Shown here in pieces: positions 2,226 through 49,575 of a stretch of 64,000 nt of DNA. The notes under the pieces were generated by a model, which was not told the DNA's origin, did not search any database, and worked only from the letters and a program-made list of their open reading frames with translations. The position numbers and the translations under genes are program-made. How positions within the stretch are numbered: the stretch's first letter is position 1; every line of letters starts with the position of its first letter. Where the stretch lies: the NCBI GenBank assembly GCA_965113315.1, contig OZ220363.1; one strand, 5' to 3'. Source of the stretch: Podarcis vaucheri. Taxonomy: Eukaryota.

Positions 2226-2325
2226 ATGACTGTGAAATTGCTCTCTCTTCTGCCTGTGCCATCTGTGCTCTTGGCTTTCTGCCTTGCCACAAGGAGTGAG
2301 CAGGAAAGGACAGCAGCTTTACAAG
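2226..2325 (+). CDS. SIGIRR: SIGIRR candidate signal-peptide exon ([33 protein letters not shown])
   Basis: Acceptor ccattttgtag ends at 2201. ATG at 2226 has A at -3. Basic n-region is followed by a hydrophobic stretch. Strong donor aag|gtgag is phase 1, matching the 11854 exon. Confidence 0.65.
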
Positions 2326-5300
2326 GTGAGACTAAAAGAAAAAGTTGTCCTGGTGTGGTTTGTGTGTTTTATGAATATATGTAGGCTTGTGGTACTTAGC
2401 AATTAAGGCAGTCTGACCCACTGTTTTTTCTTCTCTGTGCCCTTCTTGCTTGACCTGATCAGGCCTCCTGCCTTTACAGTCACGTGTGCTTCAACCACTA
2501 ATCTCTCTTCTGTGTTTGGATATCTCTTTCTGGAAGAGACACACTTTATTTATGAGACAATATGAGTATTTTGAGAGAAGATTTGAAACTTCTTACATGG
2601 CAGGCCTATTTCCATTGTTGTTTCTGTTTGGCACAGTGGCCTTTCCTAGGCCTTGCTTCCCAATTTGAAATTAGTTTTCCATTGTTGTTTTTTGGTCAGT
2701 GAGATTTGTGTGCGTGCGTGTGTTTGTATTTAACACTTGCTATCTGATCATAGGGGTGTCCTATGTTTTCCATTTGTTCTTGAGGCCTCATTGAATTCCA
2801 TTTTCCCATGACACACATTGCCTCATTGAATTCCATTTTCCCATGACACACATTGCCAGGTTCCTGTAGGCTTCACATCAGCTCACTGATGCTTGATATG
2901 GCTGGCTTCTGTCCTGTGAGGGCTTTTCAGTAGTCAACATTTGTCTATCCATCATTCTCTTTGCCTTCTGCTTAACATTTGCTGTAGGGGTGCATGGAGC
3001 TTTAGGAGAGAATGAAAAGTGCATCCACTGTTCTTCTGACCTTTATAATCCAGTCTTACTCTGGCCTCTGCCCATGCTGGCCCTGCAGCCAGTGGCAAAG
3101 CATACAGGAACTTTGGAGAAAAAAATGGGCTATTCTTCTCTGGGAACACAGGATGCTGGCTAGTCAGTTGCATTCTAAGGGGTGGCTTAGTACAGCAACA
3201 TAGTCATCCTATTGGCTGATCAAATCCTAAGTTTATCTGCTGACCAGCTATGTGGTGTTTATTTGTTTTCTGTTTTTCATTTGCATTACTCTTGGCTGCC
3301 TTGGACATATGTAGAAGGAAGTGGAATACAGTTTTTTAAAAAGAAATTAATTAGTAGTGGCCAACTTGTAGGGATCTTCAAAATATGTGAGTGTGCTACT
3401 CTATATTGCATTACAGTACCTGTGCAAACCTGTGTGTGTTAGGCTTCCAGTGGCTTTCCCTCTAGTTTTCTAATCTCTGGAGTAGGTGTCATTGCAGTGC
3501 TGAAGAGACAGGCAAGAATATACATTTGATTTTGCCTTAGTCGGGCCTATAAATCCTTAGTTTCTAGTCCAGAAGTGCCATAGACTCATTCTGCCTTTGC
3601 CACTGTGATGTTTGTGCCACAGCTGATTACTATGGGGTTAAATTTAGTATGTGGTGGGGCAATGAAACACTAGGTTAGCCATACATGGAACTGACACATT
3701 TATTCCCATAATTAGTGTTTTCAAATGACCATATAAATAAATAGTTGAACTGTCGTTGTAGGAAGTGAGCAGATTTATCTCTGGAGTGTCACAGATATCT
3801 GCATACAAGATTTTTACTTCCTTATGATTTATTTTTGATGTGGCTCACAAAATGATCAGGCAGTGCACGATGAAGAAACTCTACTGTGATCCTTCTAGAT
3901 TTAACTTGCTATCCCTATGTATTGGTAAAATAGCTTTGTTAGTACAGAGATGAAGTACTCTTTCGTAACACATCCTACTACAAAGGTAAGGATGCTAACC
4001 TTCCATTTCCATCGATTGACAATGGGGACACAACCTGCATCTCTTATTAAGTTGTATGCTTAAATAGGGTTGTGTTGGTATCCGTCTGTCTTGGGAGACA
4101 ATAGACGAGTGTGACTTTGGGAGTGAAGTCAAGCTGTTGGAGAGTTACAGTGTCTGCAGTGGTTCCAGAAACATATACAGGAGAGATATGTTTTCTTGCA
4201 GGTGGTGCAGAAGAAGGCATCTGGTTTTGCTGCTAAAGTTACACCATGGTGTTTCTTTTTTCTGCGCTCATACCAGTGATCATTCCTCTGGTTACTGACT
4301 GACTGTCTCCAGACACTGTGATTGCCTGCAAACGGTTCCCACATGGTGGGGTTAATGTTGCCAGCCTTCATATCACATTTGCAGACATCTTTGTAACACA
4401 GTTAGTCTGCCAACAGACCTAGTTTACTATTATTTTTTAAATTTATATACTACTCTTCATCCAAAGACAATAGGCCAGCTTACAACATAAAAACACAAAA
4501 TACACAGCATAATAATAATAATACCCCCTTCTGTTATTCATTCATTTATCCCATACTTCCAGTGCATTTCCCCATGACTTTCCAAACCGCAGAAAGCCTG
4601 ATTCTTTTTTAAAGTGGATTTGTTGAGCTAGTCAACAGAGCCTTTCAATCCAATTTAACGGCTCAGACCTAAGTTTCCGATGTGCTCTTGAATCCCACTT
4701 ACAAAATAGTGACTGTCTGGAGGCACCCTTAGGCAATTTATGCTTGCCTAATTGAAACAGCAACATAAGATGATGTGGGGTGCAACATTTTGATGTTTTT
4801 AGAGGCATTTTTCTTCTTCTGAAATATGATTTGTCTCTTAAATTCCCTCTGAGTATCCATCATGAGTAGTGCAGAAATCTTTATACATGTTGCCCAAGAC
4901 GATAAAAGATACAATATTGCCTTGGTCTAACCTCTTAAAACAATGGCTATTTTAATTTTCTGCCTCATAGAGGGAGTCTTAAAGCTATAAGTTGGTTAGA
5001 AATTGAGATAATCCTTATCTTTCTCTGCCCCTCCCAGTTATATGGGTTTGTGTGTGCCTGCTGTGATCCTGGGAAAAGAACTGGCAAAGTCAATACGATA
5101 ACATTCCTGTCTGTAGGACCAATAAATAAGCCATAATCTTTGAGTTTTACATAGAGGTGCCTTTTCAGTTATTACTGTTGCAACAGACCAACCTAATCTG
5201 CTTTTATTGATAATGCTTTTGTATAAATTGACCACACCTTGCAAAGAAGCAAACTGGCTAGAAAATGTGTATGTCATGGTGGGGGGAGTGAGAGAGTGAG

Positions 5301-8300
5301 CTTGGGAGTTTGCTCAGCCAGTAATAGGTGTCAGTATCTTCAAAGGGATGCGGGTGGCGCTGTGGGTAAAAGCCTCAGCGCCTAGGGCTTGCCGATTGAA
5401 AGGTCGGCAGTTTGAATCCCCGCGGCAGGGTGCGCTCCCGTTGCTCGGTCCTAGCGCCTGCCAACCTAGCAGTTTGAAAGCACCCCCTGGTGCAAGTAGA
5501 TAAATAGGGACCGCTTATAAGCGGGAAGGTAAACGGCGTTTCCGTGTGCGGCTCTGGCTCGCCAGAGCAGCGATGTCACGCTGGCCATGTGACCCGGAAG
5601 TGTCTCCGGACAGCGCTGGCCCCTGGCCTCTTGAGTGAGATGGGCGCACAACCCTAGAGTCTGGCAAGACTGGCCCGTACGGGCAGGGGTACCTTTACCT
5701 TTACCTTTTTATCTTCAAGGTATGCTGTTTGTTGTGACATTTCTTTGTGTCTTCTCTGTATACTGGGAGAACCCTTGAGTGCCTCCCAGACCATTTACAG
5801 ACACATTTACACAGTTTTCTTTTCATTTAGCGCTATATTTGTGTTAGCCTTTGCAAAGGGATAGCCATGCTGACATTCACTTATAGAAACAGGACTGAAT
5901 GTGTACTCCAGTGCAAGCCTGGTTGGGACAAAATGCCAAATTGTGGTTTGTTTAAAATAAAGAAAGGAGGAAGGAAATGGATCTGTGTGGCTCATACTTA
6001 TGCTGCCAACCCATGCTTGGGCATTATGTCTGAACCAGTCCTAGGGGTCTGACAACAAATTAAAATTATTTGAGGCCATTTACACTGCACCTTAGTTTTG
6101 CTTTAACCACATTATTCTGTGCAGTTTTGCAGGGAAGCATTTTGCACAGCAGTTACTGGTTTTAAGTTTATTGTGGCAATTACATAATGAAGGAGATAAT
6201 TGATTCTCCCTTCCAGACTCTTTATGATGATGTGAAACCAGTTTACCATCTTGCAGGGATGCACGCTTTGTTGTTTGTAGGTTGAAGCCTGCCATATTTT
6301 TTAATGAAATAGGTGATGTTTAGGGTTGTTATAACTGCCCTGAGGCATTTTGCTGCCTGAGAGGGACAGGATGACTTCCCCACTCCCCTTCCATGTACAG
6401 AAGCTGACTCTGGCAACGAGACAGCATCCTTCACCACACCTGAAGGCATCAGCATGCCCAGGACAGGCCATATGGCACATAGAGTTCTGTCTTTCAACAC
6501 TTCGTTACTCCTCGCCCTAATTGGGTCATTGCCAACACGGATAGATGCTGCTGTGCAGCAGCATGTGTTGCATGGGCATGTGCTAAAGTTTCTGGACTGT
6601 GTGGCTTATGCTGGTTGCCTCTTTGCAATGCATACTTCTTCAGTCTGGGGCTTTCCTGTACTGTGACGTGTTGAAAGAAAGTGACTAGGTGAGACATATA
6701 GCCATACTAGGCCAGCAACAAGCAGGCTTACTGGCACAGGAGGGTAGAAATGGCCAGGAGACTTAGGAAGAACATCCAAGGTGGCGTCGTTACCACCTGA
6801 GACAATTGCCTCATTCTGTAATGATAGGGTTGCCCCTGCAAAAAGCAAAGGCTCTCCCTATCATTATTTGTTTAGTTAGCTGCCTGTGGCTTGGATCCTA
6901 GGCACAGTTTCTTGGAGGTACGTTTCAAAATTGGTAGGATTTACTTCCAAGTAATAAGATGCATAAAAGTGAGGTGCCAGATTACTACAGTTCTAGCAGA
7001 TGAGTTTCCTTACTCCTTAAATTAAATATATCTACTACAGTGCAGTAGGGTATTGATTATCTGATTAAGCCCTTTAACTCATCAGAAATGTGAGGAAATA
7101 GTCGATAGAGCAGAAGACTCTTTAATCTCAGTGTCATAGATTCAAGCCCCACACTGGGCAAAAAGATTACTGCATTGCAGTGGGTTGGAGTCAGCAAACT
7201 TTTTCAGCAGGGGGCCAGTCCACTGTCCCTCAGACCTTGTGGGGAGCCGGACTATATTTTTTTTGGGGGAAAGAACAAATTCCTATGCCCCACAAATAAT
7301 CCAGAGATGCATTTTAAATAAAAGGACACATTCTACTCATGTAAAAACATGCTGATTCCCAGACTGCCCACGGGCTGGATTTAGAAGGTGATTGGGCCAG
7401 ATATGGCCGGATATGGCTTAGTTTGCCTACCCTTGGAGTAGATTGTCCTTGTGCTGTCTTCCAACTCTATTGTTCTATTCTCTACTGCTGCCTAAAGTGT
7501 ACAATACTTTGGATTGATCCCAGGATTTGGGATGGTTGGTGTTGAAGGAGTGCTATATTTAAACATATGAAAGGGATGAAAGAATTACATTTTGTTTTGA
7601 AATGTAGAATAATGTAGTTAATATTGATTTGTGCAAAATACAAGGAATAGTGAATGCCAAAAAAGAAATGGAAATCTGTGTATTGGCTGAAATAGGCAAA
7701 ATATAAGAGCAGAGGAATAAATATGGGTTTAAGGGCCCCTACCTGTTAGCTGTGCTGAAGTCTTTTTAAAAAGAGCTTATGTGTGTAGTGGATAGCGGCC
7801 ATGATCTTTGATATACTTTGGGACCATAATAGCAGTATGAATAATGTAATCTTGCTTCCTGCACATTGTCTGATATACCAAATTGATATCTGAGAATCAT
7901 TTACAAAATAAAAGGGACAGGTTTTTAATCTCATAGTTGCATACTAGAAGATAGAAGGAGCTGCCTTTGTATTTTTAAGTCTAATATCCCAGTCTTGGGA
8001 TGCAGAACATACAATGCTCTATTATACATGTATATGCTTGGACAGGTAGTCTCAATTTAAAGGGATACTGTATATGTGCATTTTGAGCACACAGCATGAA
8101 ATGGATGCTTTCATGGTGTAGTGAGGAGTGGAGTGTACATTTCTCTAGAACAGATCCCTTCTCACAGACCAAGCATGCCAGGACTAAGGTCTGACTAGTG
8201 GTAGTAGTAGTGGCAGTAGTAACAGGATTAAGAATAAAGGGCTGACCTCTCAGCAAAGATTGAGTGAAAGCAGATACCATACAGGCCCCAGCATAAGCTG

Positions 8301-11300
8301 CTCCTCCTGCTCTGCCCTCTGAATGAAACAGAAGTAAAAAAGAGACTTCAGATAATTTAAACTGGAAACGATAATAATTTTTGAAGAGAGCTGAAATTTC
8401 CTTATGTGTGTGCTTCTTCTGTTTTGCTGGTCAAACATGTTTGGCAGGTTTTTAATCAATACAGAAACCTGTTTACCAGAGGTCAAAATGGAATGAGTAG
8501 TTGTCTTACTTCCAAACCAATTTTTGCTCTCCAGTCCCAGTGAATCCCATCCATTTCCTCTAGACTTCCTGCAAACACAATGAAGATTGTAGGATGTTTG
8601 AGTGAAGGGAACACACAAACATTCCTTGTAAAATAATGCAGCATAAGCAGGAGCTGAAGCAGGAAGGAGATACTGTGCAGCAAACTGCAGCCACAAAGTG
8701 CCCCTGACACAAATGATTCAATCTCTTTAGCATTTATAAATACATTGTGGAGTCAGAAATCTTTGGCGATCACTCGTAGCTGAGTAAGATCATCTTCCAT
8801 AAACACGGTTTTAACAATGAGTCCGTAAGTGACTGTCAAGGCCAATTCTGGATCCATACGGCCTTCCACAGTGGGGACATTGGTTTCCAGGCGGGAGTTG
8901 ATCACGGTGTGGATTTGCCAAGCATGCCTTCCTCTTAGCACGTTTCTCCCTTGCTTCCTGAGTTTGAATGTCTTCAAAGCCCATGACACCTTTGGTAAAA
9001 GCTGTTCTCCAACTGGAGCGCTCGCAGGCCAGTGTTTCCCAGTTGTCAGTGTTTATACTACATTTTTTTAGATTTACCTCAAGACAGTCTTTAAACCTCT
9101 TTTGTTGACCAGGAGTCAGAAATATTTGACCAGTACAACAGTGCACTGGCTTGAGTAACTTCTCAGAAAATGTGATATTCTTGTAGCAAAAGCACTACCT
9201 GTGCAAAAAGCATGAGGGATGATAGTGGAAACGGCCCTGAATTAAGCTGCATGGTAAGTGTATCCTGTTGTGACAAAATCCATTTGTAAATCAGCATTCA
9301 GTATGTGAAATATTTGTGAAAGGACCCTATGAGAATTAGCACCCTCTGAGATAAGTCTTTGGTTGCATCTTAATGCTGGGATCCATACCTGCCGTTTACT
9401 CCCTCCCACTATCTGATGGTTGGGTGTGTGCTTAACAGCTCCTGTGTGTAAGCAAAAAGAGCAGCATTTCTTTCTTCAGTTTCTTCCTGATCGGGTATGG
9501 GAATGTTTGTCTAGCAGACAAAGGCAACATATTATGCATACTTGAAGGGACCCAGCCCAGTCACAGTAAGGTGTTGTTGTTTTATTCATAGTTTATGGAT
9601 AGAAGGATGAAATAATGAAATGAAATTCTGTGGCAGTACTACTCTGGCAGTTCTTTGTAGAATAATTATGGTCATGATAGAACAGACAAGAGCAATAAAA
9701 GATGTGTAGGATTAGGCTACATGTATTCAGATGCTGAGCAGTGGGCTTTACTCCCTTGTAAGGTATAGAACTGCAATCCTATGTTACTTTTGTGTTAGCA
9801 AAAAAAGAAGCCATTCATATACGAAGCAATTCAGTTTCCACCTGGGAAATTTCATTCATATAACTTTAACAACAGCTGCAACAATGATGATAATGCCGTA
9901 ATGCTTATTTGGAGTGTTTTCAGGACAAAGCATCACAGTAGTCAGTGGCACTTTAACAACTGTGTTTGCATCTACTAAAGTTATTGCCATTTCTGCCAGA
10001 ACCATCATAGTTGTGAACAATTCATTGTATATATAGGACTGCTGTCCCACCAACAGTGAAAACCTTTGATAATGGAAGTGCTCACTTGAATATGAGTTCT
10101 CACTTGACGTTCTGCCAGCAGTGGCATTAACTTTAGTAGAGTTGCGTATTTAGGCAAGGTAAAGGTTAAGGACCCCTGGATGGTTAAGTTCAGTCAAAGG
10201 CAACTTTGGGGTGCGGTTCTCATCTTGCTTCAGGCCTAGGGAACCGGCGTTTGTCCACAGACAGCTTTCCGGGTCATGAGGTCAGCATGACTAAACCGCT
10301 TCTGGCACAATAGGACACCGTGACGAGTGCCATAGCACAGGGAACTGCCATTTACCTTCCTGCCACAGCAGTACCTAATTGTCTACTTGCACTGGTATAT
10401 TTCCGTACTGCTAGGTTGTCAGGAGCTGGAACAGAGCAATGGGAGCTCACCCCATCGCGTGGACTCAAACCGCTGACCTTCCGATTGGCAAGCCCAAGGG
10501 GCTCAGTGGTTTAGACCACAGCGCCACCTGTTCCCTATAGTTGCATATTTATGCCTACTGTTACACCAACAGTGGTAGTCAAGAACCATTGGGTGCCTCC
10601 AGAATAGTCCATCAACAGGCAACCAGAGCCCTTGAAGTTGGGTTTGAATCTCTGGTTGCTTATAGCATACAAACAACACATAAAAAGGTCTCAAATACAT
10701 AAGTTACTCTTAACTGAGAACTGCATGAGAAAATTATGTTCCATGTGCTACATCACTTGGCAAGTAGAGCGCAATGTGGAATAAATTCCCATTTAAATTT
10801 ATCTGCTAACTTGAGGGAGACTATTTTAGAACTGGTACATAGATGGTACTTAGGTCATTTAACTATCATATGTGATGGCCATGTGTGCAAAATGAATTTT
10901 ACTTGGAAGTCACCCCACACCAAAATAGTATTGATCAGTCAGACATGATTTATGCTTTGTACTTCTGGACATTTCTGAAAATGATTATTATTCTTACAAA
11001 GACTTATCAACTTTTGTTTGTAGCAGCTAAACTGGATATGTCTGAGCACTGGAAAAGATACAGAACCTCTATCTATTTCTCAATGGTATCAAATAAGGTG
11101 GAGGTTCACTGTCATGGACAAACAAGTGCATCCATTTCATGTACTTCATTGTTCCAGTTCCAGTTCATATCAAATACTAACAAGTATACAGACATGCAAC
11201 TTTTTGCTCAGCAAAATGTACTGTGTTGTACAGGTTTTTTTTGAAGGTTGATTGCTTTTCCTTTGAACTTGTAGCTCTGAAGCACTTATTATAATTATAG

Positions 11301-14300
11301 TATCTTTTTAAAAAAAAGTTTCCAGGTGTGCAAATGGCCAGTGAATACCACCAATGCTTTTTTAAAATACATTAGCAGTATTTGGTTGGCTAGGTTTCCC
11401 CCCTGTTCTTTCCTTTTTCTATAGTGCTTGCTTCAGTGCATTGCCTCTCCTAGCATTTTTGTGTGTGGTGTGTGTGTTATGAGGAGGGTTGTTGAATGTG
11501 ATCATTGTGTTAATGCCCTTATTATCAATTTGTTCTCTGTTCATTATAAATAAGGAATCTATGGCATAGATAGAGTTCTAGTTAGAATCACATAGTTAGC
11601 TGATCTTGTTATCAGGATGATAAATATTTATCTCTCTTCTCTATAGTAAATTCACTTTAAACAGTCTTTCAGGAGCCATCACATGGTATGCATATTAAAA
11701 GTAAGTTCAGCCAGGGGGGCAGTGTCTATGACCTGGTTGGGCATGAATGACTTGGTTGCTGTTGGAGTTGCGTATTCTGTGCTTGCTGTAGAAATGTAGG
11801 TTGGATTAGGCATCACAGAAGTAGTTGCAATTTAACTGCTTTGCTTTATTTAGAATTCTTTTCGCTGACGGTTTCATCTAATTTATCGTGTGTGGACCCA
11901 GATCACTTCTATGATCACACCATTTGGACCCAGCAAGAACAGGTTAATCATTTGTTCTGCCCTTTGGATAACCAGAGCCTCCAGCTTCTTCAGTCTACCT
12001 CAAACTTTAGCATCCAGTGGAGCAAAAACTGTCATCTGCTTAACTTCACCGCGTTAAGCCACCTGCACAGCACACTGCAGAACACAACAACATACCTCAC
12101 CTTTGAGCACGCAAATGCCAGCGATGCAGGCAACTATACCTGCACGCTCTACTTGAACGATCAGAGAAACAGCTCCTTCACTGTCCGGCTGGTCATGGCA
12201 GGTGAGTGAAAGAAGTGGGAATTTTCAAACATGCCTTTGGATCCCTAACCTAACACTGACGTCTCCTCTTGGGCCCATCCCAGGAGAAGCAGTACTGCTA
12301 CTGTTTCAAGATGGGCCACTTGTCTGCCTAAGTCGGGATCCTATGTTTCTCATTAGACACATAGTAGCTGTGAAGTATCTAACTATGTAGGGCATGATTT
12401 TGTCCGTTTTCACCTAAACATAAGGTACTGATCATACTCAAATAAGTTATGGCATTAGATAAGCCCTGGGGATGTGAGCCAATTTATCAAGTGCTATGAT
12501 CTAAATTATGCATTGTCAACCAGAAGTTGGCGGGTTGATGTTTGTGACTGTATGTGTGGCTGTTGCTGAAGAGGGCTTCCTTTTACCTGGGAGAAAAAGG
12601 CAGACACGGAGCTCTTTCTGAGCCCTCTCTGCATTTTATGTTATATCTAAGATGACATATAAAGGTAAAGGGACCCCTGACTGTTTGGTCCAGTCACAGA
12701 TGACTCTGAGGTTTCAGCGCTCATCTCGCTTTACTGGCCGATAGAACTGTGTAAACAGATAAACCTGACGAAGGCTTCACTGTGGTGGAGACGCAGTTTA
12801 GGAGAGAGAGAAAAGACTTAATGTTTCTAAAGCTGTGATAACAAGTGATAGTACCTAAAATGTGGTGAGAGGTACCTGAAGCTACCAAGATAAGCTCACT
12901 CCGTCCCCCATTTGCTAGTTGCATTGTCAGAGTTGAAATGGGGAAAGACAGGTTTAAAAAATATATATATGCTGAGATTAAAAAAATTAGCAGACTTGTT
13001 GGGACAGATAAGTGTGTTTTTGTCTCTGCTTAATCTTTTATAGTGCACTTAAACTAGGATGGATCATCATTTTGGAGTACTTCATTATGCTATTAGAAAC
13101 ATAAATTAGCTAAAGATGGTCAGAGGGAGATCATACGTCATTTGAGCTGAAATCCTGCACACACATCCTGAGACCTGGAAGTCAGGCTTGCTAGACACTG
13201 TAGATCTTATTTCTGAGAAGATTTGTATAGGATTGTACTCTTTAATTTTTTTTATTCATTAAGATAAGGATGGTAGTTGCTGGTTTCTCAGGAAGTTCTC
13301 CTGAACTGGCTAAGGACTGGATATGGGCTCTAAAAAGAACGTTTTTTGTATTGTTCTCCCTTTTAAATAAAGGTAAAGTTTGGAAATGAGTCCAATACAC
13401 ACAGAGGTACCTACAGAAGGGAGAGCCTTTACATTTTAAAAAATGATGGCCATGATGGCCTAGTTCTCCTTTTCAGAATTTAAGGGAATGTAAGGGAAAA
13501 GGAAATTAGGGACAAGTACCTGTGACATATTCTAGTTTTTAATGCAATGTGACATTTGCACCTTAAACACCCTATTTTCCGCAATAGGATTCAGAAAGTT
13601 CTTCATTAAAAAAACGCACGCTCACATATGCTGAAAATATTTAGCATGGATGAATGAGTTGACAGTATGAAAGACAGAGGGGGAAGAACAGCACTGTGCT
13701 GGACTCTGAACAGGCAGTGAGAATAATTAAAGTACTGGCACTAGGACTTCAAAAGTTAATAATTAATACCATATCTCATATTCAGCACTTCTGTGATGTG
13801 CATACCCCTTTATCCTGGGCATTTCTCTATTATGGGACATGACATGCTTTCCAGATAACCTGAACATTCTGTCTTTCCCACTATAGTCCTTACTGAATTT
13901 CTCATTGTTTTCTCAAGTCAAATCAGAACTGCAGAACTAGCCTTGAGAGAGAGGTTATACTCAGCAACTTGTCTAGTTAAGTCGGCGAACCCACTGTGCA
14001 AGAGAGATTGTGCTTAGGTGCAGGGTCACAGGGACAAGAGTAGCTTGACTTTCTTTGTTATGTTAGCCAGACCTAAATAGCCAATATAAGATTTGCAGTA
14101 TGCAGTCTGGAAGTTCAGTGCTCTCATTGAAAAGCTCTCTTACGGTGTACTGTTTTTGTTTTCCCAACAGATATTTGCAGTGTCCTTCCTCGTTTCCTTT
14201 ACCCCTCCAGCAATCTGACTTTGCAACGTGATTTGGGAAGCCAGTTTACACTGAACTGCACTGTGCAGCTGCCCTACACGAAAAGCTGTGATTTTGGCCT

Positions 14301-15796
14301 TTATTGGATGAAAGATGACCAGTTGCTAGACAACGAGACCTATGCTTCTTCAACTCATTGGTAAGAAGGCTTTTATGTATAATGGAAAATAAAGCTAAAT
14401 TGGCTGTATAAACTAGAAACAAAAGAGAGAGAAACAAATTAAAATAGTGTCTCCCAGACTCTGAAGATAATGGTGGATCTTTAAGGGCTTATGTATACTA
14501 TCAACCTTATAGGTTTGTGGAATAGGGGCAGTAGTGTAATATATATAGTTCATTGGGAGGAAATATCTTTGCAGTAGCAGGGGGAGATTGAGTGAGAGTG
14601 GGAGATTGTGTTTCTGTTAAAAAGAAAATTGTACACTTAAGCCCTGGAGAAGGGCTTAAGACAATGCTCTATGTATCAGTCTTCATTGGGGAGGCAGAGG
14701 GAGAGGAAGATGACCCTTTCAGATGTTTGTGGCTTCAGAACAAATATGGTTTCATGAACACCCCTTTTATTTTAGTGTTCCCACTGCAGGGGACTTGTGT
14801 TGTGTTGTACGTTATCAGTGGTGTCATGGATATGTTCTACTAGGTTACTGGGAACTCATGTAATATTTTGTACATCACTCAATAATGGCATGGAGGCTGT
14901 AGCTGGGAGAAGAAAAATTGACATTTCACTAGTAAGAAAAAATGCACTTTAAGCAATAGGACATTGCTATTATAGTTCCACAAAAGAAGTACTTTTATAT
15001 AAGACAGTGGGATCCCATACAACAACTAAGCGACCACAATTAATCCAGTGCTTTAAAAGAACAAGAAAAAAGATGATTTTGAAAGTCCCCAAATTTCTAC
15101 TAGTTTTTGTGGAAGAAAAGGTTTTCAAAGGCCAACATGATAAAATAGTGACAGTATTTCCAGATCATAGATACTCAAATGGACACTCTTGTTACCAACT
15201 CACAGTTCATTCCTTGTCCAAATTTAATGTTTGGTATAATCCAAGATTCATAGGGTGGAGCCCTCTGAGTTTCCTTCCTGTCCGGTTCTGACTGAAATTT
15301 CCTAGTGTTTGTTTTCCATCAGTGCTAACCTAAATCATCTTCTATTTGCACCCCAGGTTCAATGACAATAAATCAGAGATATTCATCTCCAGCACTTTGG
15401 ATATGAATGTAACAACAGATGAAATTTATGGAGCATTTACCTGCTTGGTTAGAAACAGTACAGCAGTTTTCACACTGCAAAAATCAGGTAGCATTTCTTT
15501 GTACTTCATACCATGTGCATTTGGGTGTGGGCCGGTACTCCATTTGAAGGTTGTTATCTTTATTAAGTTGTTCAAAAAAGATACTGCTACTCACTAACTG
15601 TATTCCATAGTAGAATTCCCATGAGTATTTCTGAAATGAGAGTTGGAGATACTTTTTTTTTAAAGAGTTGTCAGACTACTCTGAAAACACACTTATGGCA
15701 TTCAATCCAAATGTAAATTTCCCTTTCAGAGTTGACCTCTGAAAACTGATAGATAAGAATATGGCTGTGTACAGCATTGATTGGCTGATGCCTTTG

Positions 15797-15854
<58 letters not shown>

Positions 15855-18800
15855 TATCTTTGACCCCACCCCAGAGCAGTTCTGCACTTTGGTTAACAAG
15901 ATGACAAATAAACATGAATGAAATACTTTAAACTCTTTTTAATTTAATTATCTTTAGAAGGGCTTCTTATCTGAAGCTTGATGGGAGGGGCAAGTGTGAT
16001 AACTGAGCTTGCATTTGCTTTGTACATTTGTCATTAAAATGGCAGAACTAGATAAATCTGAGATTGTGCAGCAGCTGAGGAATTGAATGTGATTTATATT
16101 CTGTCTGCCTCCTCTTGAGACTCAAGTAGCCTAAGTGTTTTGGATTACATTTTCTAATTACAGTCTAGAAATCATCCATGGCTCAGCATCATTATTTCAT
16201 TTCTCCATTGGTGTATGTGAGATGCTAAGGGCCATTTCACACATTATGTGTGTGTCTTGGAATGGAACAGTGTGTGTGTGTAAAAGAAACTACATCCTTG
16301 GGTCCAATGTACAGGATTCAGTATGGTCTATTGAGGATGTGGGTAGCATGGAATCTGGTCAGAGTTTGACCCACAGTGAGTTTATAGAGGTGTGACAGCT
16401 TCACTATACATTCAGTTTATAATTCAGTCCACATTTTTCACTTTGTAGTGCCACTGTTCAGATGACTCTTGGCATGTATGCAAAGGCAAATGTGTTTTTT
16501 GGGGGAAGAAACATAGTTTTGAACTAAGATGGCTTCAAAATTCTGAAGTATTGTATGACCCTCTGAGAATTTATGAAGTGGGTATCTCAGCTTGGCTTTC
16601 CTTCTTTTAGGAAGAAGCAAGACTTAATTTTCTATATAGAAACTAACTGTTCTCATTTAAAAAATATAGTAATTTACTTTAGCCCATGCATGGCCATCTG
16701 ATAGACTGAAGTCTAGCTGGGGTGATAAGAGTATTTGCTTTTATGCTGTATCTAGATGCCTTCCTTTTCTTTTGAATAGGTTTCCCCAGTTTTATCTTGG
16801 AATTCAAGAAACTCAGCTGAGCCTGCCTGATCCTCTTCTTAGACTTTAAAAGATGTTTTTGCTCTAGCTGGTAGTAGGGTTTCTAAAAAGGGCTTTGAAC
16901 CAGACTTAACATGTCTCTAGAGGAGTTTAATATAAAGACAGCCTTTTGTGCCCTCAGTATTGCTCCATGCTGGCTTTAGGGTCTCAGTTTACAAGAGCAA
17001 TTTTATGATGGCGTCATCAGTGAATCTGATGGCAGAAAATTGCCACATGATGGCACCAGCAGACAATAGAAACTTTTCTGAGGTTTTCAATCAGTCACAG
17101 CCTCAAATGGTTCTACACACCAAAACAAACGTGCTATCAGGCTGCCCCCAAGCAACTCAGCTGTTTTGGCATGCTTGAACACTTTCAAATTCCTCCATCT
17201 GGAAGTTTCCATAGGCTGATGGAGCAATTCTGAGATTAGAGCCTCAGTGTATTTTAAAGCAACATTCAGCAAATGGCTACAAAAAGTCTAAATGAACTTG
17301 CCCGCATGCTTGCAGGAAGAAATTGAATTGGCACTGGAGAATGTGAATAATTTAGTTCATGCACATCTTTACTCTGAAAACCTTTGATTTACTTCTGCAT
17401 GTGCATCTTGTGAATGGAGATCCTTGCAAAATTTGGAGGATGATCTAACAATGTGGTGCTAGAATAAATCTGTCTTTTAGCTTCTGCTCATCTCTTCCTC
17501 ATCATGGTTGCACGTTCTGATAGTCAGAACAGTCATCAAGATACTAAAAATTGTTCAAGAATGACATAACCCCTCATTTTCTTTATAATTTGGTATATTC
17601 TGAGACCATAGACCCCAACTCTTCTCTTCCTTTTTTCTCTGCCATCCTATCAATTGTAAGGCTGTTTTCTCATTTAATGCTATTTAAAATATGTCTTTCT
17701 ATTACAGCAGAGACTGCTGGGCACTTGGGCGCTGTGCTAGCTGCACTTGTCACGGTGGCACTGCTGTTACTAATGGCTGTGATGTATGTGAAGTGCCGTC
17801 TGAATGTGCTCCTCTGGTACAGAAACCGTCATGGAGAGGTGGAGATCAATGGTAAATATTGGGCTGGAGAGTTGGCTGTCACTTTTCCCCTTGTGAGATT
17901 CGAGTTTCAATGACAGTCCAACCCAAAGTGTGAACTTCTACAAGAATTATCCTCTCAGTGTTATAGCTAGTCAGCACAGGTTTTGTTGTTGTTGTTGTTT
18001 TAAAAATTATAATAAATTTCTCCTCTTGGTACTTTTCCACAGATGGAAAGCTGTATGATGCCTATGTGTCTTATTCTAACTCAACGGATGATAGAAAGTT
18101 TGTCAACTTCATAGTGAAGCCACAGCTGGAGAATCGTCATGGCTACAAGATTTTCCTGGATGATAAAGACATCCTGCCCAATTCAGGTATAGAACCTTGT
18201 CCAACACCTCATTTAATATGTACCTGGGCACTCAGACTTGCTGTTGAGTTCAGGCTGCAAATAACTTATCTGAAATGGATTAGTTGGCTAAATGAAGAGA
18301 AACCTTCAGTTTAATTTGCCCATTTGGCATCCTATGTTTAATATGGTAGCTTTATTAAGTGTTAAAATATCCAATTGATATTGGTACACACACTAAGTCT
18401 GAATATCAGGTTAACTCTTGCATCCATTTTCAAACAAGAGGAGGAGAATGCAAAAAACACTATTTCTATTAGACACTGAGACAGCAGGATGAAAGTTGGT
18501 ATGCAACTTTCCCTGAAAGTTGCCCTGAACATTCTGCATTTCAAGTACAGCTTAATCCATGTCCCTGTTTCCAAGGTAGATTGGAAAGATGTAAAACATA
18601 GTGCAGTGCTATATCTGACTGAGATATTAGAATACAGGCTGGTGTATACATTCAGGACACCATTGTGCATTTCATATATGATCCCAGCTTGACATCTGTA
18701 TCCTTTTTCAGAGTGAAGGAAAGGGCCACAAACATTGCAATGCAGTACATTGGTACCTCGGGTTACATACGCTTCAGGTTACAGACTCCGCTAACCCAGA

Positions 18801-21800
18801 AATAGTACCTTGGGTTAAAAACTTTGCTTCAGGATGAGAACAGAAATCGCGCAGCAGCAGCAGGAAGCCCCATTAGCTAAAGTGGTGCTTCAGGTTAAGA
18901 ACAGTTTCAGGTTAAGAACGGACCTCCGGAACGAATTAAGTACTTAACCCGAGGTACCACTGTATCTGAAATGAAGCCTGTTGAACGCTGCACTTTGCTA
19001 TTTAATAGATGCAAAAGTATGGCTCTGAAAAATTACTTTGGCACACTATTTTGTGCCTCTAAAGCAACCTAAAATACCTTTAATTCTAAACACCAATAAT
19101 GGCAAAACTGCAAAGTAAGAACTGACAGGCTCTCTGTTGTACGAAGAAAAATGTATTCTCCTTAACCACCCAGTTGTCCACAGTTAGGTTCCATTTGCAT
19201 ATTAAGTAGGATGTATTCACAGTCTGCCCAGTATATGCTCAGCACAACTGGTGGGCTTTCTACACCTGTTCAAAGTCTGTGGCATGATGCATTGCTTAAC
19301 TTGCATGACCTTGCAGATATGCATTTCATAGAGATGGGTGGTTGTTTTGTGCTGGCCTGCTGCCTCTCCCTGTGCCTCCACATTTCCAGGCTGTTATTGC
19401 ATATGTTTGACAATGTGTTTCTTTATTTTGGGCACAGCTTGTTTAATCTTCCTCCAAAGAGCATGAAGTGTAGTTCCTATCCAGGCAGTTTACAGGCCCA
19501 CCCCTGTTCTGGCTTCCGCAATATCACTGTAATCATGTGCCTTCAGACCATTTGTTCTTATCTTCAACTGTTTTGTTTAATAAAACTTCTATAAAAAGTA
19601 TGCAGCATCCATTTGCATGGGGATGCAAAACAAGCTGTGTACAAAATGCAGCTCCTCCATATTCTATAATGCTGCCCACAGTGGACAGTTCTGGTTAAAC
19701 AAGAATACACCACAAAACAGCATTTCTCAGCAGCTGTATTACCTTTTTGAGTGTATAGTACTATGGAAACGGCATCTGTATTGTGCTCTTTGTGGTATGT
19801 CTAATAATTAAAAAATGCAATGTTTGAGTATACTCTTCATTTTTTTTTTATGTCCTGAGTGTTCCACCAGAGGCACTCATATCCAAAACCAATGGTGCTG
19901 TCTGAAGGACAGGGAAGTTCTAAACAGGCTGGTTAGTTTTTATTCCATTGCCCAGGGGTTCTCCTTTCTGTAGAGCAGAGCGGATATGAATTTGGATGCT
20001 AGGGTATTTCTTTCTTGTACAGGGGAAGGATGAATGCTGAAACAACAATGGATTGGTTCTGGCCCTTTTCAGAAGAGATTTAGTTTTTCTCCTCTCTTTC
20101 AGAACCTTCTGCAGATCTGATTATGAATGTCAGCCGGTGCCGCCGCCTCATTGTGGTTCTCTCTAATGCATATCTGGAACAGGAATGGTGCAACAATAAT
20201 TTCAGGTAATTAGAGCGTCAGCAATAGAGACAAGTTCTCTGATCCTCCTTTCGTTTTTGGAGGATCAGGAATGACTCGGGCAAATAGTATGTGCAATTCT
20301 GATTTGGAGGGATCACTAAAATCATAGTTTGCTTATTTGGTTGTCCTGGTGAACTATGGCTTGTCAAAATAGTCAAGTGTTCCAATAAGTTGTACTCATA
20401 AGAGGAGGAGGGAAGGTAGAAGGGAGTAGGAAGGCAGGTGGGAGTATCTTCCTGGCTCTCCTATCTATGGTTAGAAGAGCATCTGAATTTATCCAATTTC
20501 TGTATACACCTCCAATCACAACACCCAGAATCTCTCTCATATTTCTGGAAATGAAGCACAGCAGTTTAGTGTTAATGCCTCTCAAACCAGTTCCTGAAGT
20601 TTTCATTGAACTGTTTGAATTCTACTGAAACTAGTCGTGCTTAGAATTAATTTTTTGGGTGACTAGATTGGGTTTCAATAATTTGGTTGTGGATTTGCTT
20701 AGGACTCTAACCGATTGTCTGGTTTTGCAGGGAAGGTCTTTGGAGGCTGCTGGAACTATCCCGGAGGCCAATCTTCATTGTCTTTGAGAGCCAGTACCGA
20801 GAAATAGCACATCCAGCCATAAATTTGCTGAAGCAGCAGAAGAGCACAGTGACCCTTCTGATGTGGCGTGCTGGGTCCATGGTAAGTTGTGGGCTGCAAG
20901 GCCATAACTTCATCACTGTGGTTTTGTTTCTCAGTGGCAAGGCAGTACTTGAAGCTATTCAAGAAGCATAGAAGTGTAGAGTAGCTTCTCTTCCAAGAAG
21001 GGTTGAGAGCCAATCCTCCATCACTTGACCTTGCTGTGATGTATACCAGAGTAATAACTGTTACCTGCTTTTCTTGGCACTAAAGAGTAGCATCTTCATG
21101 AAAGTAGGTTGAGTATATTTTTGTCTGTCCGTAATTTTGATCATGATCTCCTGTTATTTACTTTTTTATTTTAGCTATTTACCTGTTGACTAGGAAATCA
21201 TCAGCTCCAGAGATTTGCCAAATGATACCTTTTTAGATGAACATGGCTTGACTGCTCCATGGCTCATGCGTGGAGGTCATGAGCAGTGTTGTAAGCATTG
21301 CAGAAAATATAGATAAGTTATATTTTAACTCCAACTTTAAAGAAGCAAACAGAGCCACAGGGAGGCACCAGAACCTGAGAAATAAGAATTGGAAACATAT
21401 ACTTTGCTTCACCCAGAGTACTCTCAGTGCAAAGAGAATTGAAAAGAATGGAGAAGGAAAAAAGCACAAAAACTTCCCTAAAATGAGCATTTGCAGGGGA
21501 GCATTCTAGCAGGATAGAGACTTCTGGTTTACAGTTATTGCTGTTTCTTTATCTGTGCTAAATGAACAATAGCATGCTTGTGACTCACAATACTCCTTGC
21601 AGTTGCACATCAGGATATTTAGTTATTTTATTATGCTTTTCACCCACCCTTCACCTCACGGTCCCAGGGCAGGTTACAACAATTAGAAAAACTACTGACA
21701 TGACACATGTGTGTGTATTTTTAAAGAACCGGACCCATCATTTTTTGTAAGTCTGGTATAATGCAAAACTTGTACCTCGTATAAATATTTAAATACATAA

Positions 21801-24800
21801 GTAGGAGGCACACACAGGTAAACAAATAACTGCAAGCATGCTTGCAATAGACCTTAGGTTTCCAGAACTTAGGGAGTGTGAGGAATGGAGGGGAGGGGAC
21901 AACAGCACACAGTGCAAAGACACCCCATCAAGCACCTCCCACTCTTGGGGGACAGGAAGCACTGCAATAGAGTTCATTTGAAGGTGGTCCTGTGGACAGA
22001 TGTGCACAAAAATCCACATGGAAAAATCAGAGCCGTGCAACTCACTTGTGCAATTAACACTCTGCTGTGCACACAACCTATGCCTCAAGACATAAGAAAG
22101 GGGCTTTTTGATTTTACTTACAATGTAAAGAATCCTAAGCAGCTTTGTTAAACAGGCCTTTTAGACACAGCATTCAAGGAACTACCTACTCCCCTCCCCA
22201 GCTAATAATAAGTTACGACAGCCAAAATATTTCAAAGCAGCTTTAACAGTGTCTGGAAAATGCCATTAGGTGTAAGGATACTGCTTCCTTCTGGCAGTGA
22301 GTGGATCAAAGCCACCATATGTCCGCTATTTTTTTTGTTTACTCCTATCTCTAAGACAAAATGGGAACAGCACATTAACATTTTTAATAAGACTGTTGCT
22401 GTACATGAGCAACAGGCTGCCAGTCTTTGGCTTCTTGTTTCTTAGTCAGATTAAAAATCTGACTCTTTCCAAAATAAGGCATTAGGAGAGGAATTAATAT
22501 CAAGAGAGGTTTTAAAGTAACATCCAGTGGAGTGGTCCTGTCATTGCTAAATTATTTGGTTCAAAAAAACCCAATTGGCTGTATTCCATCAGGGTGGAAT
22601 CAGCACAGCGATCCCAGTTTTCAAGAAAGGTGACACACAAATTATATACCAATCAGTCTTATAGATAGCATTAAAAATTACATGTAAAATACCTCCTGTT
22701 TTGAATCTGAAGAATGGCCGATGTTGCACAATATAATTGCTGAATAACAAGCTGACTTTAAAGCTGGCTGGTTAATGCTTGACAACCATTCTGTGCTTGC
22801 TCATTTAATTCCTGTGTTAACAGAAAAAATAAGCTCTTTGCAGTTTTTGTTGATTTTAAAACTGCCTTTGATTACATCAGTAGAAATACATTCTTGGAGA
22901 ACCTTGAGCACCAGCATTGCTTGCTATGTGTTAATTTGGTAGTAGCATTACCCTTAAAAACTAAGCTAAATTATCTCATAAGTGGATTGTGTCCAACTAT
23001 ATTCCTATATTTAGGGTGGATTGCAGATTGTTCATCCTGATTGGTTTGCAAGGAGGTTATACAGTAGGAGTGGGCAACCTCTGGCCCATAAGCCAGTATT
23101 CATTCTGACAAAGCAAACCCCTTCAGCTGGCAAGATTATACTCTCTGCTCTCCACTCACCAGCTGATGAGCAGGGGATTTGATAGTGCTCTGTTTGCCTG
23201 TACATACCTGCTGCCCTGCTGGAAACAGGCACACACAGTGAAAGAGCTCTGTATATTCCATCTCTGGTGGTTCGCTGCCCCCCTGAAATTCCATAAAACT
23301 AAAAGCTGAATGACAGCTGAATAGTACCGCGAAATATTTGCATGCCTATTGCCAATTCTAAAATGGGTTTAAATTAACTATGCAGTTGCTCTTTGCATTT
23401 GAGATCTTGGTGTTCAGGGTGTGTGTGTCTGCTTCTCATCCGACTTGATTGGGTTCAGAACACCATCAAATATGCTAACAGCATTTCTCCAATAAAAAAT
23501 GGGCCATTTTAGCTCTAAAAGTAAAAGTGAATGCTAGCCTGCTTTAACTATTGGAATTAACTCCTGCAATTCTTTTGAATCAATATAACCAAAAGGTTGT
23601 TGTAATTAATAGTCAGGGGATAGTTTATTCAACTCTGATGCTTGGTAACCAAATTTTTTTTCCCGTTGAATATTTTTCCAGCAGGAATTCTACGGTTGCA
23701 AAATTTGATTTAAAGAATAGTGTTTGTGACCTCTTTATTCAGAAATACCTATATTTTGTTTTCAACTCTAAAATCACACCATGGCAGTTATGTTTAAATA
23801 TAAACATATTGAATTGTATCTGATGGATCTATCAAATTTCACCAGCATAAGACTTTCCCTGTGCTCACAATGCAGTGTATGCAACTTCCTGTCATGGGAG
23901 ATGCAAAAATATTTCTTTTGCTTCCCAAATCTGCTTATGTGGAGAACATTCTGTGAAAGGTATAACCCATTACTTACTGGATGAATTTCTGAGAAAGCTT
24001 GTAATTTTTTCATCAGTTTCTGGGGGAATGTTGCCATTGATCAGGCTTTCAAATAATTTATTTTTTACTGGCAAGTTCAAAAAAGGGCATTATCAACACA
24101 GTGACCAACTTTTCTTTAGCTGTGGCCGAATGCTGTTAAAAGTTTGTGGATGCTTCTGCAATAGGACTCCAAGCTGAATGTTTGTGGTGGCTGTTAATTT
24201 CCTGCCAATGTTTTTGGTTTAATGATGTTTTCATTTTTGAATTCTTGCTGTTTTATTTACAGTGTTGGTCCTATGTAGCTGTACATTTTGACTTGATATG
24301 GCCAATGGTCAATATAAATAATTCTCTATTTAATTTGTATATCTACCCACCTTGCTGTTCCCCAGAGAGGCACACTATCAGATCAGTTAGGCTGAAGTAG
24401 CAACAAGGACGCTGAATGGATTAGGTGGAAATATTGTGGCTTCTTGTGCCTGAAAAGGCTGTAAAGCATTGCTGGAGGTTCCTGTCAGCTATGCCCCTTT
24501 ACCTCAAGGGTACAGGCAGCTCCCAGTATCTGTCTCAAATTCTTGTAACCTCTATAGGTCACTTTCTCCTCTAGGGCTATGGCTTACTGCAGGCTTCCTC
24601 AAACTCAGCCCTCCAGATGTTTTTGGCCTACAACTCCCATGATCCCTAGCTAGCAGTGGTCAGGGATGATGGGAATTGTATCTCAAAACACCTGGAGGGC
24701 CAAGTTTGAGGAAACCTGGCTTACTGCATACAGCTGTAGCTTGCAGCTATGGTTTACTGTGATGTACAGACTGGGCCACTAAGGTGAGATGAAGTTAGGA

Positions 24801-27404
24801 AATAGCAAGCTTGGGAAAGCTATCTGTGCGAGGCATTGAAGCATTGCAGTCTGTTTCTGAGTTTTTGCTGGATACCAGCCACATGTTCTCTTGCCTTTTA
24901 TCCATGAGGACAAAGCCAAAAGCCTTATTTTAAAAAAAAGAAGAAGAAAAGAATTCACTCAATTTAAAATTGCACTGAAATCCTAGGTTAATGGAAAGGC
25001 GAAATCTGTTGCTTTATCTGGTCACGAAAGCCTTCCATCAGAAGTAATGCCACTTAATACCTCTTAGATTTTGCAGTACGTTTCATCTCGAAGATGAAAC
25101 AAAGCTGAATGGGAAAACTGTTGGTGGGGCTGTAGATCCCTCTGTTGTAGCGAACATTTATCTCTCTCTGCTCAATCCTTTGGGAGCCAGACAGGGTGCC
25201 TGTGCTTCATAGGCGAGGAGCGCCGGTGAGAACGCTGCCCTCAAGGCAGGGCTGCTGGGACTTGCCTACAGATATATCGCACAAGGGTTTGTGTGTAACT
25301 GATGAGCATGTGACAAGATGCTGCCTCTTTACTGCTTCTAGGCGCCTTCATCTGATTTTTGGAAGGAACTGTGCCTCGCCCTGCCACGAAAAGTGTCCTA
25401 TCAAGGCCTCAGGGGAGACCCCCAGACCAGTTTCCAGGAAGACAAGGACCCTATGCTGATCCTCAACAGCAATTACTTGGATTTCCGGGGGGATTCGCAC
25501 CCTGAAGGAGACTCTGGTAACAGCACTGTTTAATCTTCACTCTGTCGCCATAGCATGCCAACAGGAGAACACACAGTTGCTCTTGATCCTGCTCTGTGTT
25601 TTTTGTTTTTTTGAGTGTTAGTCCACAGTTAGCCAGAAAGATTCTCAAGTGAGGCTCACAATTAAGTTTGAAAGAAAAAACCCCATTAAAAAATCACTTG
25701 ATAGAAGAACACTGCACTTGCTAAAATTAGCAAAAGTATAGCCCAGCAGATTTATTAATCAGTCAGCCAGGTGCCTTTCTACACACTGCCATGAGCTAAC
25801 TGTGTGCTTCCTGCCTGTATTATTACAGCTATTTTAGTATGGTATGCCAAAACCCTATGTACACTTACTTTAACGTAAGTTCCATTGAACTCAATCCTTT
25901 AGAGTGGATATGTGTAGGATCAGGCCTCACTTTTGATTACAAAAGCTAAGGCTAGTCAGATGGTAACCGCCCCCCCTCCCCGAATTAAAGATGCTTTGGA
26001 ATATGTGATCAAATTGTGCTATGTATTCTCATCTTAGTTTCACCTCTAGGAAATAGGTTTCTTCTTTATTTCAGAATTATCAAAACCTGTTCAGCCAAAG
26101 GTGACAGTGGAGACCAATGGAAGTGAAGCCTCTGCTCCCACTTTCAGATTCCTTAAAATTTATTTTCTCCAATTTAAGCCTGTGTAGTGTAGTCAGATCA
26201 CAAGCAGTAGTATTTATTTAAGGCCTTTATATACCATCTGACTTGGCAGAATGTGTCTACTTTGGTTGATCACCAGGCTTGGTCACCATTGTATGCTGTG
26301 TCTGTGGCTTCCAAATGGCATAACAGGTCTTCCTCTTTCTTTCTTTCTTTCTTTCTTTCCTTCCTTCCTTCCTTCCTTCCTTCCTTCCTTCCTTCCTTCC
26401 TTCCTTCCTTCCAATGGCCATTCCAGAGTTACACCTAATTAGCTGATCCTTCATCAGTCAAACAACCATTACCTCAATCCAAATGAAATGATCTTCCCTG
26501 TCATGCAGCAGTCCACACATACATACTGTGGCACATTTTGTAGCAGAAGAATTAATTCATCTGTTTTTCCCATTCACTGCTAACATTGGATAGGGAGCAG
26601 GGCAACATGTTTTCATAGAGAACATGTTATTTTGGCTATGAATCCATTTGTGTGTTTGCAGAGGAAGAAAGGAAATAATGGTGTCGTTATCACTACATGC
26701 TTCCTTAGAGTAGCAATACCAAGGAGTGGAAATTTACGTAATTTACCACCTCCATCTATCATTTACGTGCAAACATACCCAAGAGTTCATAAAAGAAATG
26801 GGTTTTATATCCACCAAAGGGCAGTTTTCCATTCTCGGAGCCCGAGACTACAGAGAGCTTGGTGGTTTAGTCCTGACATCCTTTTTCCTAGGCCTGTGGG
26901 ACTATGGCTGTACAATGGATCAATGAGTAGGAAGCGCACCTGAGGCATCGGTTCCAGAGGTTGTGAAGAACAAGCTCTGGCCCTAGGGATTTGTTAACAC
27001 AGGCTGAGCACTTGCAAAGCAATACATTTTAATTTTAGTAACAGGAGCAAAATAAGTTCAGTGGTCATAAAAGATTTACGAGCAACTGGCAAGAGCAAGC
27101 CCAGCTCGCTTGTACACGGTGATTTTATTGTCAAGAGAAGAACAGAGAAAATAATGGGTTTGGCTGGGCTTTTCTTTTAGTTGAGACAGCAGCGTTGGGC
27201 TTATTTTGCTGAGGGTGTTGCGTTCACTGTCATTAATAGGCCTTGTTTCTTGTGTGGCGCGGCTGTGCACCTTGTTGGAAGCTTTCCTCATTAGTCTAGT
27301 TGCTCCATACAACAGCATGCCAGGATGCTTGAGGCTCCTCATTCTCTCACTTGCAAAGGGAATTGTTGCTTGGAAGACATTTCATTCTCACTAGGAGCGC
27401 CTGA

Positions 27405-27444
<40 letters not shown>

Positions 27445-49524: not shown

Positions 49525-49575
<51 letters not shown>

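Follow-up and report, generated by a model that had tools for sequence, protein, structure and literature searches.

The SIGIRR locus of the lacertid lizard Podarcis vaucheri raises the question of whether the receptor encoded there carries one immunoglobulin (Ig) domain, as its name implies, or two. In reviews, SIGIRR (IL-1R8, TIR8) is the member of the IL-1R family that has a single Ig domain. A double-Ig relative, DIGIRR, was found in teleosts and was termed 'fish specific' (PMC7144542). DIGIRR and SIGIRR share a chromosomal location and no fish has both (PMC9448908, PMC9020223), the fish protein has a signal peptide that mammalian SIGIRR lacks (PMC9448908), and DIGIRR has been viewed as 'transitional' between the three-Ig receptors and SIGIRR, whose phylogeny is little known (PMC3705552, PMC9020223, PMC7144542). 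An earlier note, made from the letters of the 64,000-nucleotide (nt) stretch analysed here (contig OZ220363.1 of assembly GCA_965113315.1; hereafter the window), had proposed that the lizard gene kept an ectodomain of two Ig domains, corresponding to D2 and D3 of the three-Ig receptors, behind a signal-peptide-like leader. Our analysis favors that proposal, which is supported by splice junctions, selection, fold, and relatives and locus. With a probability of about 85%, the window contains the lacertid orthologue of SIGIRR/IL-1R8, and its full form is a 559-amino-acid (aa) type I protein with a putative signal peptide, a D2-type Ig domain, a D3-type Ig domain, a transmembrane (TM) segment, a signalling-defective TIR domain and a long tail. 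The evidence thus supports retention, at the SIGIRR locus of a tetrapod, of the architecture known in fish as DIGIRR.

The additional N-terminal Ig domain, of the IL-1R-family D2 type, is encoded by exon B (11854-12201, + strand), a 348-nt exon of phase 1-1 with an acceptor at tttatttag|AA and a donor at GCAG|gtgagt. Its product consists of 115 whole codons and contains 4 Cys and 8 N-x-S/T sequons. Inspection of the frame and borders confirmed the absence of stops and the good splice sites claimed for this exon, and a recount gave the same number of sequons. Exon B joins the canonical SIGIRR Ig domain (D3 type) in frame, as had been predicted, but that domain does not lie on one exon and is instead split between exon C (14171-14360, + strand) and exon D (15357-15487, + strand), both placed by splice joints and by their match to the database protein P0130. 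Upstream, the leader exon A, which is alternatively included, supplies an ATG at 2226 followed by a signal-peptide-like reading frame of 33 codons plus 1 nt, and ends at a phase-1 donor (2325|gt). The phase and the in-frame join to exon B given in the earlier note both stand, whereas its exon start at 2226 does not, as the exon spans approximately 2202-2325 on the + strand and its first ~24 nt are 5' untranslated region (UTR). Residues 1-33 of P0130 are identical to the exon A product of the window. Joining exons A, B, C and D to the TM exon (17708-17851, + strand; placed by the joint 15487>17708 and by a helix predicted at residues 261-298) yields a single open frame with zero stops. Exon borders were inspected by eye and by script, and P0130 and a second database protein, P0121, stood in for the joined spliced model in searches.

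One possibility is that exon B is a decaying pseudo-exon, a chance open reading frame (ORF) that happens to be spliced in, or an exon of another gene. Equally long open runs do arise by chance in the window, where the first 30 kb hold several ORFs of 119-148 aa. Because an open run of 116 codons is not by itself beyond chance, the case for exon B rests on Pfam, spliced reads and orthologues.

Exon B exceeded the Pfam gathering scores for Ig_2 (29.7 bits; cut-off 27), I-set (24.1; 23.7) and ig (22.2; 21.8), and AlphaFold2, given exon B together with 19 aligned sequences, predicted a seven-strand beta-sandwich with a mean pLDDT of 83.5 and a pTM of 0.76. Foldseek returned at least 500 Ig matches to this model at probability 1.0, with titin-type I-set domains first. 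The best 998 Foldseek chains were re-aligned and re-ranked with VIA-align, and in each of the top nine of these the aligned range was D2 of an IL-1R-family receptor (Z 11.2-11.9). The nine chains belong to IL-1RAcP (5vi4_C residues 135-234, 4yfd_B and 4dep_C), IL1RAPL1 (5y32_B, 4yh6_B and 5wy8_B), IL-1R1 (1ira_Y residues 97-198 and 1itb_B) and IL-1R2 (3o4o_C residues 114-216), and eight of them superimposed with a root-mean-square deviation of 2.1-2.9 Å over 91-97 residues, the ninth, 1itb_B, giving 8.7 Å over 104 residues. A titin-like I-set domain, which Foldseek alone had offered as the nearest fold, was set aside after the re-alignment put IL-1R D2 first by a small margin.

Profile comparisons pointed the same way. 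In a full-length profile of 17 proteins, positions 34-242 gave a single continuous alignment to residues 112-319 of IL-1RAcP, and the same profile was collinear with D2-D3 of IL-1R1, IL-1R2, IL1RAPL1, IL1RL2 and ST2 (E 1e-9 to 3e-14), while a D2-only profile matched residues 107-208 of IL-1RAcP. A language-model atlas, taken as a lead only, ranked fragments of IL1RAP and IL1RAPL2 first. The full-length structural model (pTM 0.32) has two beta-sandwiches (residues ~50-150 and 155-257; pLDDT 70-90) and a long helix at 261-298; it is poor beyond the Ig domains and the TM helix, and no domain packing was drawn from it. Because the profile and structural comparisons agree, the reading of the ectodomain as D2+D3 is supported, with exon B predicted to form a D2-type Ig domain collinear with its counterpart in IL-1R-family receptors. 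Pfam, AlphaFold2, Foldseek with re-alignment, and the profiles therefore concur on the Ig fold and the IL-1R D2 resemblance that the letters had suggested.

Evidence that exon B is part of the mature message came from transcript contigs of three related organisms and one raw stranded RNA-seq run, compared over 11800-17799. The joints 12201>14171, 14360>15357 and 15487>17708 were present with GT..AG ends in all three contigs, one from each organism, and contig depth at the joints equalled that of the remainder of the transcript. The raw run contributed three reads with three start points across 12201>14171, the junction on which the proposal had been said to depend, and one read across each of the other two joints; all were on the strand expected of a + strand mRNA. 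Within the compared interval, depth was confined to exons B, C, D and TM, except for an intronic repeat. Since every contig and the raw reads carry its joints, exon B is always included in the mature transcripts compared here.

The intronic repeat is a fragment of ~85 nt between exons B and C (12658-12741) that has huge depth in every RNA run, with a summed contig depth of 5,000-23,000 and ~190 raw reads per base, and its reads continue into a variety of flanking sequences. Rather than belonging to SIGIRR, it appears to be a fragment of a squamate SINE-like element that many transcripts contain. The intron 3' of exon D contains a GA/GT microsatellite (15793-15864), which was passed over as a repeat in the read comparison.

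Is exon B maintained as coding sequence? Differences between the window and lacertid transcripts were classified as synonymous or non-synonymous for each exon. All five differences in exon B are third-position and synonymous, and none is non-synonymous (72 synonymous and 273 non-synonymous sites), an outcome with a neutral chance of ~4e-4; exons C and D together have six non-synonymous and four synonymous differences in the same transcripts. Judged by these substitutions, purifying selection acts on exon B as coding sequence. The identity of D2 also exceeds that of D3 in every comparison made: 0.98 against 0.91 among lacertids, 0.75 against 0.70 as the pairwise mean of 12 squamates, and, for the window-like Podarcis protein, 0.61 against 0.55 with gharial, 0.54 against 0.41 with newt, and 0.52 against 0.43 with the sturgeon Huso. 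In 17 sequences from teleost to lizard the four Cys never vary, and neither do the motifs CPLD, W.K.C, D.G.YTC and SFT. Such conservation, combined with the synonymous-only pattern, is unlike the behavior of a UTR or a pseudo-exon.

A sauropsid transcript, P0014, speaks for decay. This sequence, from Logan transcript contigs of ~3 kb, has a leader that is nearest to that of the gharial and a D2 region that is ~60% identical to the window in its first part and then changes frame after ..SHLH, with ..AGNYTC.. readable in another frame; three cluster members are alike. The frame change may mark a lineage with a decaying D2 or reflect an error of assembly. For the exon in the window, the Pfam Ig scores above cut-off, the predicted Ig fold, the collinear homology to IL-1R D2-D3, the joints in three organisms, the synonymous-only changes and the intact orthologues from teleost to crocodilian leave the pseudo-exon explanation, in any of its forms, with a negligible likelihood.

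The lacertid sequences differ from those of other squamates at the start of D2 (11854-11874; columns 56-62 of alignment A1), where seven extra residues, EFFSLTV, are absent in all other squamates. Their restriction to lacertids suggests that this family uses an acceptor that lies 21 nt 5' of the ancestral site. Isoform X3 of Lacerta agilis (P0125) is without six of these residues.

A two-Ig SIGIRR turns out to be neither peculiar to this species nor new as a sequence. When exon B was searched exhaustively with HMMER, the matches were generic multi-Ig proteins and a 547-aa protein of a sturgeon with 53% identity across the exon, and the 90% cluster of the latter includes 'DIGIRR [Acipenser sinensis]' as well as sturgeon and paddlefish entries named 'single Ig IL-1-related receptor-like'. 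Sturgeon DIGIRR, with 52-53% identity over D2, is the closest full-length non-tetrapod relative, which bears out the suspected likeness to fish DIGIRR. Domain-restricted queries with sturgeon, lizard and gharial proteins recovered two-Ig models, named 'single Ig IL-1-related receptor', from the squamates Lacerta, Podarcis, Zootoca, Hemicordylus, Elgaria, Python, Varanus, Rhineura, Eublepharis, Sphaerodactylus, Anolis, Sceloporus, Pogona and Phrynocephalus, and, beyond squamates, from Gavialis (561 aa) and the newt Lissotriton helveticus (557 aa). The most distant two-Ig relative is that of the teleost Coryphaenoides (481 aa; D2 33% identical). The identical D2 exon product occurs in RefSeq models of Podarcis muralis, so the two-Ig sequence is already annotated; on the question the earlier note had left to be checked, RefSeq has the 559-aa model in P. 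muralis, P. raffonei, P. lilfordi and Lacerta agilis and a 558-aa counterpart in Zootoca vivipara.

No D2 protein of a bird, turtle, frog or mammal was among the 71-142 candidates returned by each word-based search, but such searches are blind to any protein that has no 5-residue word in common with the query, and their result is therefore not evidence of absence. Likewise, a library of representatives at 50% identity returned nothing beyond the sturgeon cluster and short Logan fragments when searched with exon B, because full-length tetrapod proteins probably stand under other representatives. A 2025 survey of >400 species describes SIGIRR-like proteins with one Ig domain or none and makes no mention of two-Ig tetrapod forms (PMC12108812), and a two-Ig SIGIRR of reptiles or amphibians was not mentioned in the literature searched, which took in few subscription journals.

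Whether the gene in the window is SIGIRR itself can be judged from its TIR domain and its surroundings. The gene occupies ~2.0-28.7 kb on the + strand, and the exons for the TIR domain and C-terminal tail (18043-28651, + strand) were placed by tblastn of P0130 against the window in blocks at approximately 18043-18186, 20099-20206, 20729-20884, 25342-25518 and 28445-28651. The TIR domain matches the SIGIRR TIR chain 7fcj_A of the Protein Data Bank with an E value of 4.6e-80. It has the SIGIRR-type Cys (NVSRCRR) and Leu in place of Arg-Tyr; these we take to be the positions of Ser447 and Tyr536 of IL-1R1 in the numbering of that receptor. Replacement of Arg-Tyr is common to DIGIRR and SIGIRR. 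The C-terminal tail (residues 461-559) is conserved and corresponds to the tail of about 95 aa that is typical of SIGIRR. DIGIRR is expected to keep the Ser, and Huso (..SHSRR..) and the teleost (..SRSRR..) do so, whereas the lizard has Cys. The change from Ser to Cys (C365 of P0130) is found in all aligned tetrapods and in one paddlefish paralogue, and is present in neither Huso nor the teleost; since it occurs in tetrapods that have D2, it is uncoupled from the loss of D2. As read from its residues, then, the lizard protein joins an ectodomain of the DIGIRR type to a TIR domain of the SIGIRR type.

This combination could also be imagined to belong to a DIGIRR-like paralogue, in which case a single-Ig SIGIRR would be encoded at another locus. 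The match to 7fcj_A and the Cys and Leu of SIGIRR type count against this view, as does a convergent plakophilin-like neighbor on the - strand (39961-52882), which lies outside the receptor gene and serves as a marker of synteny. Exon-sized minus-strand ORFs occur at 39.9-52.9 kb, and one of them (48573-49049) matches the Pfam Arm repeat with an E value of 2.6e-10; the Arm repeat is the sole feature of this neighbor that was tested, and the putative label PKP3, which is that of the earlier note, is consistent with it. The chicken SIGIRR locus has been reported to be highly conserved with the human one, and the fish studies cited above place DIGIRR or SIGIRR, never both, at one location. In addition, all of the RefSeq squamate models found share one name. 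Nothing in the window speaks for a paralogue, which we consider very improbable, and the window is best read as holding the SIGIRR orthologue itself.

What might the second Ig domain do? Both mammalian SIGIRR and fish DIGIRR are negative regulators of IL-1R and TLR signalling (PMC9448908, PMC3705552, PMC9020223). By analogy, the lizard protein would act as a brake on the same pathways. IL-1RAcP docks on the pair of ligand and receptor through D2 and D3, as seen in solved ternary complexes. Competition for the accessory position is proposed because D2-D3 are the domains that IL-1RAcP uses, and because IL-1RAcP is among the best matches to the lizard ectodomain. A SIGIRR with D2-D3 could fill the position of the accessory protein more fully than the mammalian form with D3 alone, while its TIR domain would be silent; we hold this idea tentatively and rate it somewhat below even odds.

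The leader of the proposed two-Ig protein opens with a basic n-region (MTVK) and continues with a hydrophobic core (~17 residues; Kyte-Doolittle mean of 2.0-2.4 at residues 5-15) and C-L-A ahead of TR. Contig X14 (organism C) joins 2294-2325 to 11854 and so contains the junction between exons A and B. The leader exon also contains an upstream ORF of 8 codons (2203-2229; ATG CTG CTT GTG AAT AAG CTA AAA TGA), the TGA of which overlaps the main ATG at 2226-2228 (..AAAATGA..), an arrangement that could permit coupling of termination and reinitiation at the receptor start.

Several points weigh against the reading of the gene as encoding a two-Ig receptor. The predicted junction 2325/11854, although present in X14, is not found in contigs X1 and X7 (organisms A and B), in which 2136-2167 is joined straight to exon B and the leader is skipped; the loose ends of these contigs before exon B match 2136-2165 exactly. 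They derive from a 5' UTR exon, exon X (2033-2167, + strand), which is at least 135 nt long in X7 and has a donor at AAAG|gtaatt. An in-frame TGA at 2140-2142 is followed by no AUG before 12195 in this form, so that, as far as the sequence allows a prediction, mRNAs that skip the leader cannot translate D2 from an AUG. Since two contigs out of three lack the leader, some transcripts are unable to encode a two-Ig protein. All 17 aligned orthologues have a hydrophobic leader, and it is from hydrophobicity and conservation that the signal peptide is called. In the structural ranking, IL-1R D2 domains lead unrelated Ig and generic I-set domains by only ~1 Z unit. The 559-aa two-Ig form of the window is known from DNA, transcripts and gene models, and the docking mechanism is one that we infer purely by analogy.

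The leader-less transcripts raise the alternative that exon B is mainly 5' UTR and that the main product is a leaderless, single-Ig protein of 412 aa starting at an in-frame ATG near the end of exon B (12195-12197; ..VMA|D..), with the two-Ig form being minor or vestigial. Besides the joining of exon X to exon B in X1 and X7 and the TGA at 2140 with no AUG after it, this view is favored by the good context of the ATG (GTCATGG), by the termination of all five short upstream ORFs ahead of it, and by the conservation of its Met in at least 90% of the alignment. Moreover, the gene models mirror both forms, as a 412-aa model beginning MADICSV is annotated in Podarcis lilfordi in addition to those of 559 aa. 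The Met that starts this model is presumably equivalent to the mammalian start. An untranslated exon B is difficult to reconcile, however, with zero non-synonymous against five synonymous differences, with four invariant Cys, and with a conservation above that of the translated Ig domain across >400 My. Five upstream AUGs, three of them inside exon B, stand ahead of 12195, and X14 includes the leader. For these reasons we regard a mainly untranslated exon B as improbable, and translation of D2 in a leader-bearing, two-Ig receptor remains the reading that we prefer.

Leader skipping may nonetheless add to the output of the gene. Leader-less transcripts may give the 412-aa, single-Ig protein from the conserved Met at 12195, in which case the D2 exon would be in the mRNA but untranslated, and a mammalian-type single-Ig isoform would accompany the long form. 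One gene would then make two proteins through inclusion or skipping of its leader: a DIGIRR-type two-Ig receptor with a signal peptide and a mammalian-type single-Ig receptor without a leader. We consider this possible but doubtful. If true, the lizard gene would represent a living intermediate for the origin of mammalian SIGIRR, the D2 exon having been reduced to 5' UTR, and the two protein forms would engage IL-1R complexes differently.

Variable use of 5' exons seems to be common across squamate SIGIRR, and in Pogona vitticeps (P0135 and P0143) alternative first exons in the gene models lead to D2-containing proteins without a hydrophobic leader. In the paddlefish Polyodon spathula a 436-aa model (P0106) retains the signal peptide but leaves out the D2 exon, an omission that the 1-1 phase of the exon allows. 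This route to a single Ig domain differs from the leader skipping of the lizard.

If the two-Ig reading is correct, a form with a putative leader spans lizards, snakes, a crocodilian and a salamander, and has gone unremarked in the literature searched. The loss of D2 would move from the transition between fish and tetrapods to later, lineage-specific events, in mammals at least, and would be a separate event from the replacement of Ser by Cys in the TIR domain. These proteins would be mislabelled by gene names and domain surveys built on 'single Ig', although the practical consequence is modest. The D2-D3 module would also provide a testable idea for the role of the ectodomain, namely docking in the manner of IL-1RAcP.

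Comparison with known systems helps to place the lizard receptor. With mammalian SIGIRR it shares what is probably the orthologous locus, the D3-type Ig domain, the TM segment, the Cys and Leu of the TIR domain and the C-terminal tail. The mammalian protein has a single Ig domain and lacks a signal peptide, whereas the long lizard form has in addition a leader and a 115-aa D2 that bears 8 sequons; the usual definition of SIGIRR, 'single Ig, no signal peptide', thus does not describe the long form and fits only the putative 412-aa isoform. The ectodomains of IL-1RAcP, IL-1R1 and IL-1R2 are collinear with that of the lizard over D2-D3 and have the four-Cys pattern C..CP..W.K.C..GNYTC, which would allow two disulfides, in common with it. 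In contrast to these three-Ig receptors, to which its identity is 16-24%, the lizard protein is without D1, and its TIR domain is without the residues needed for signalling. Teleost and sturgeon DIGIRR share with the lizard the signal peptide (putative in the lizard), two Ig domains, a TM segment, a non-signalling TIR domain and a long tail. The fish protein has been located in the Golgi or cytoplasm, a feature reported for fish, and the lizard protein is known here from its sequence. The lizard differs from the bearers of DIGIRR in being a tetrapod, and its receptor differs in the Cys of ..SRCRR.. in the TIR domain, as in mammalian SIGIRR.

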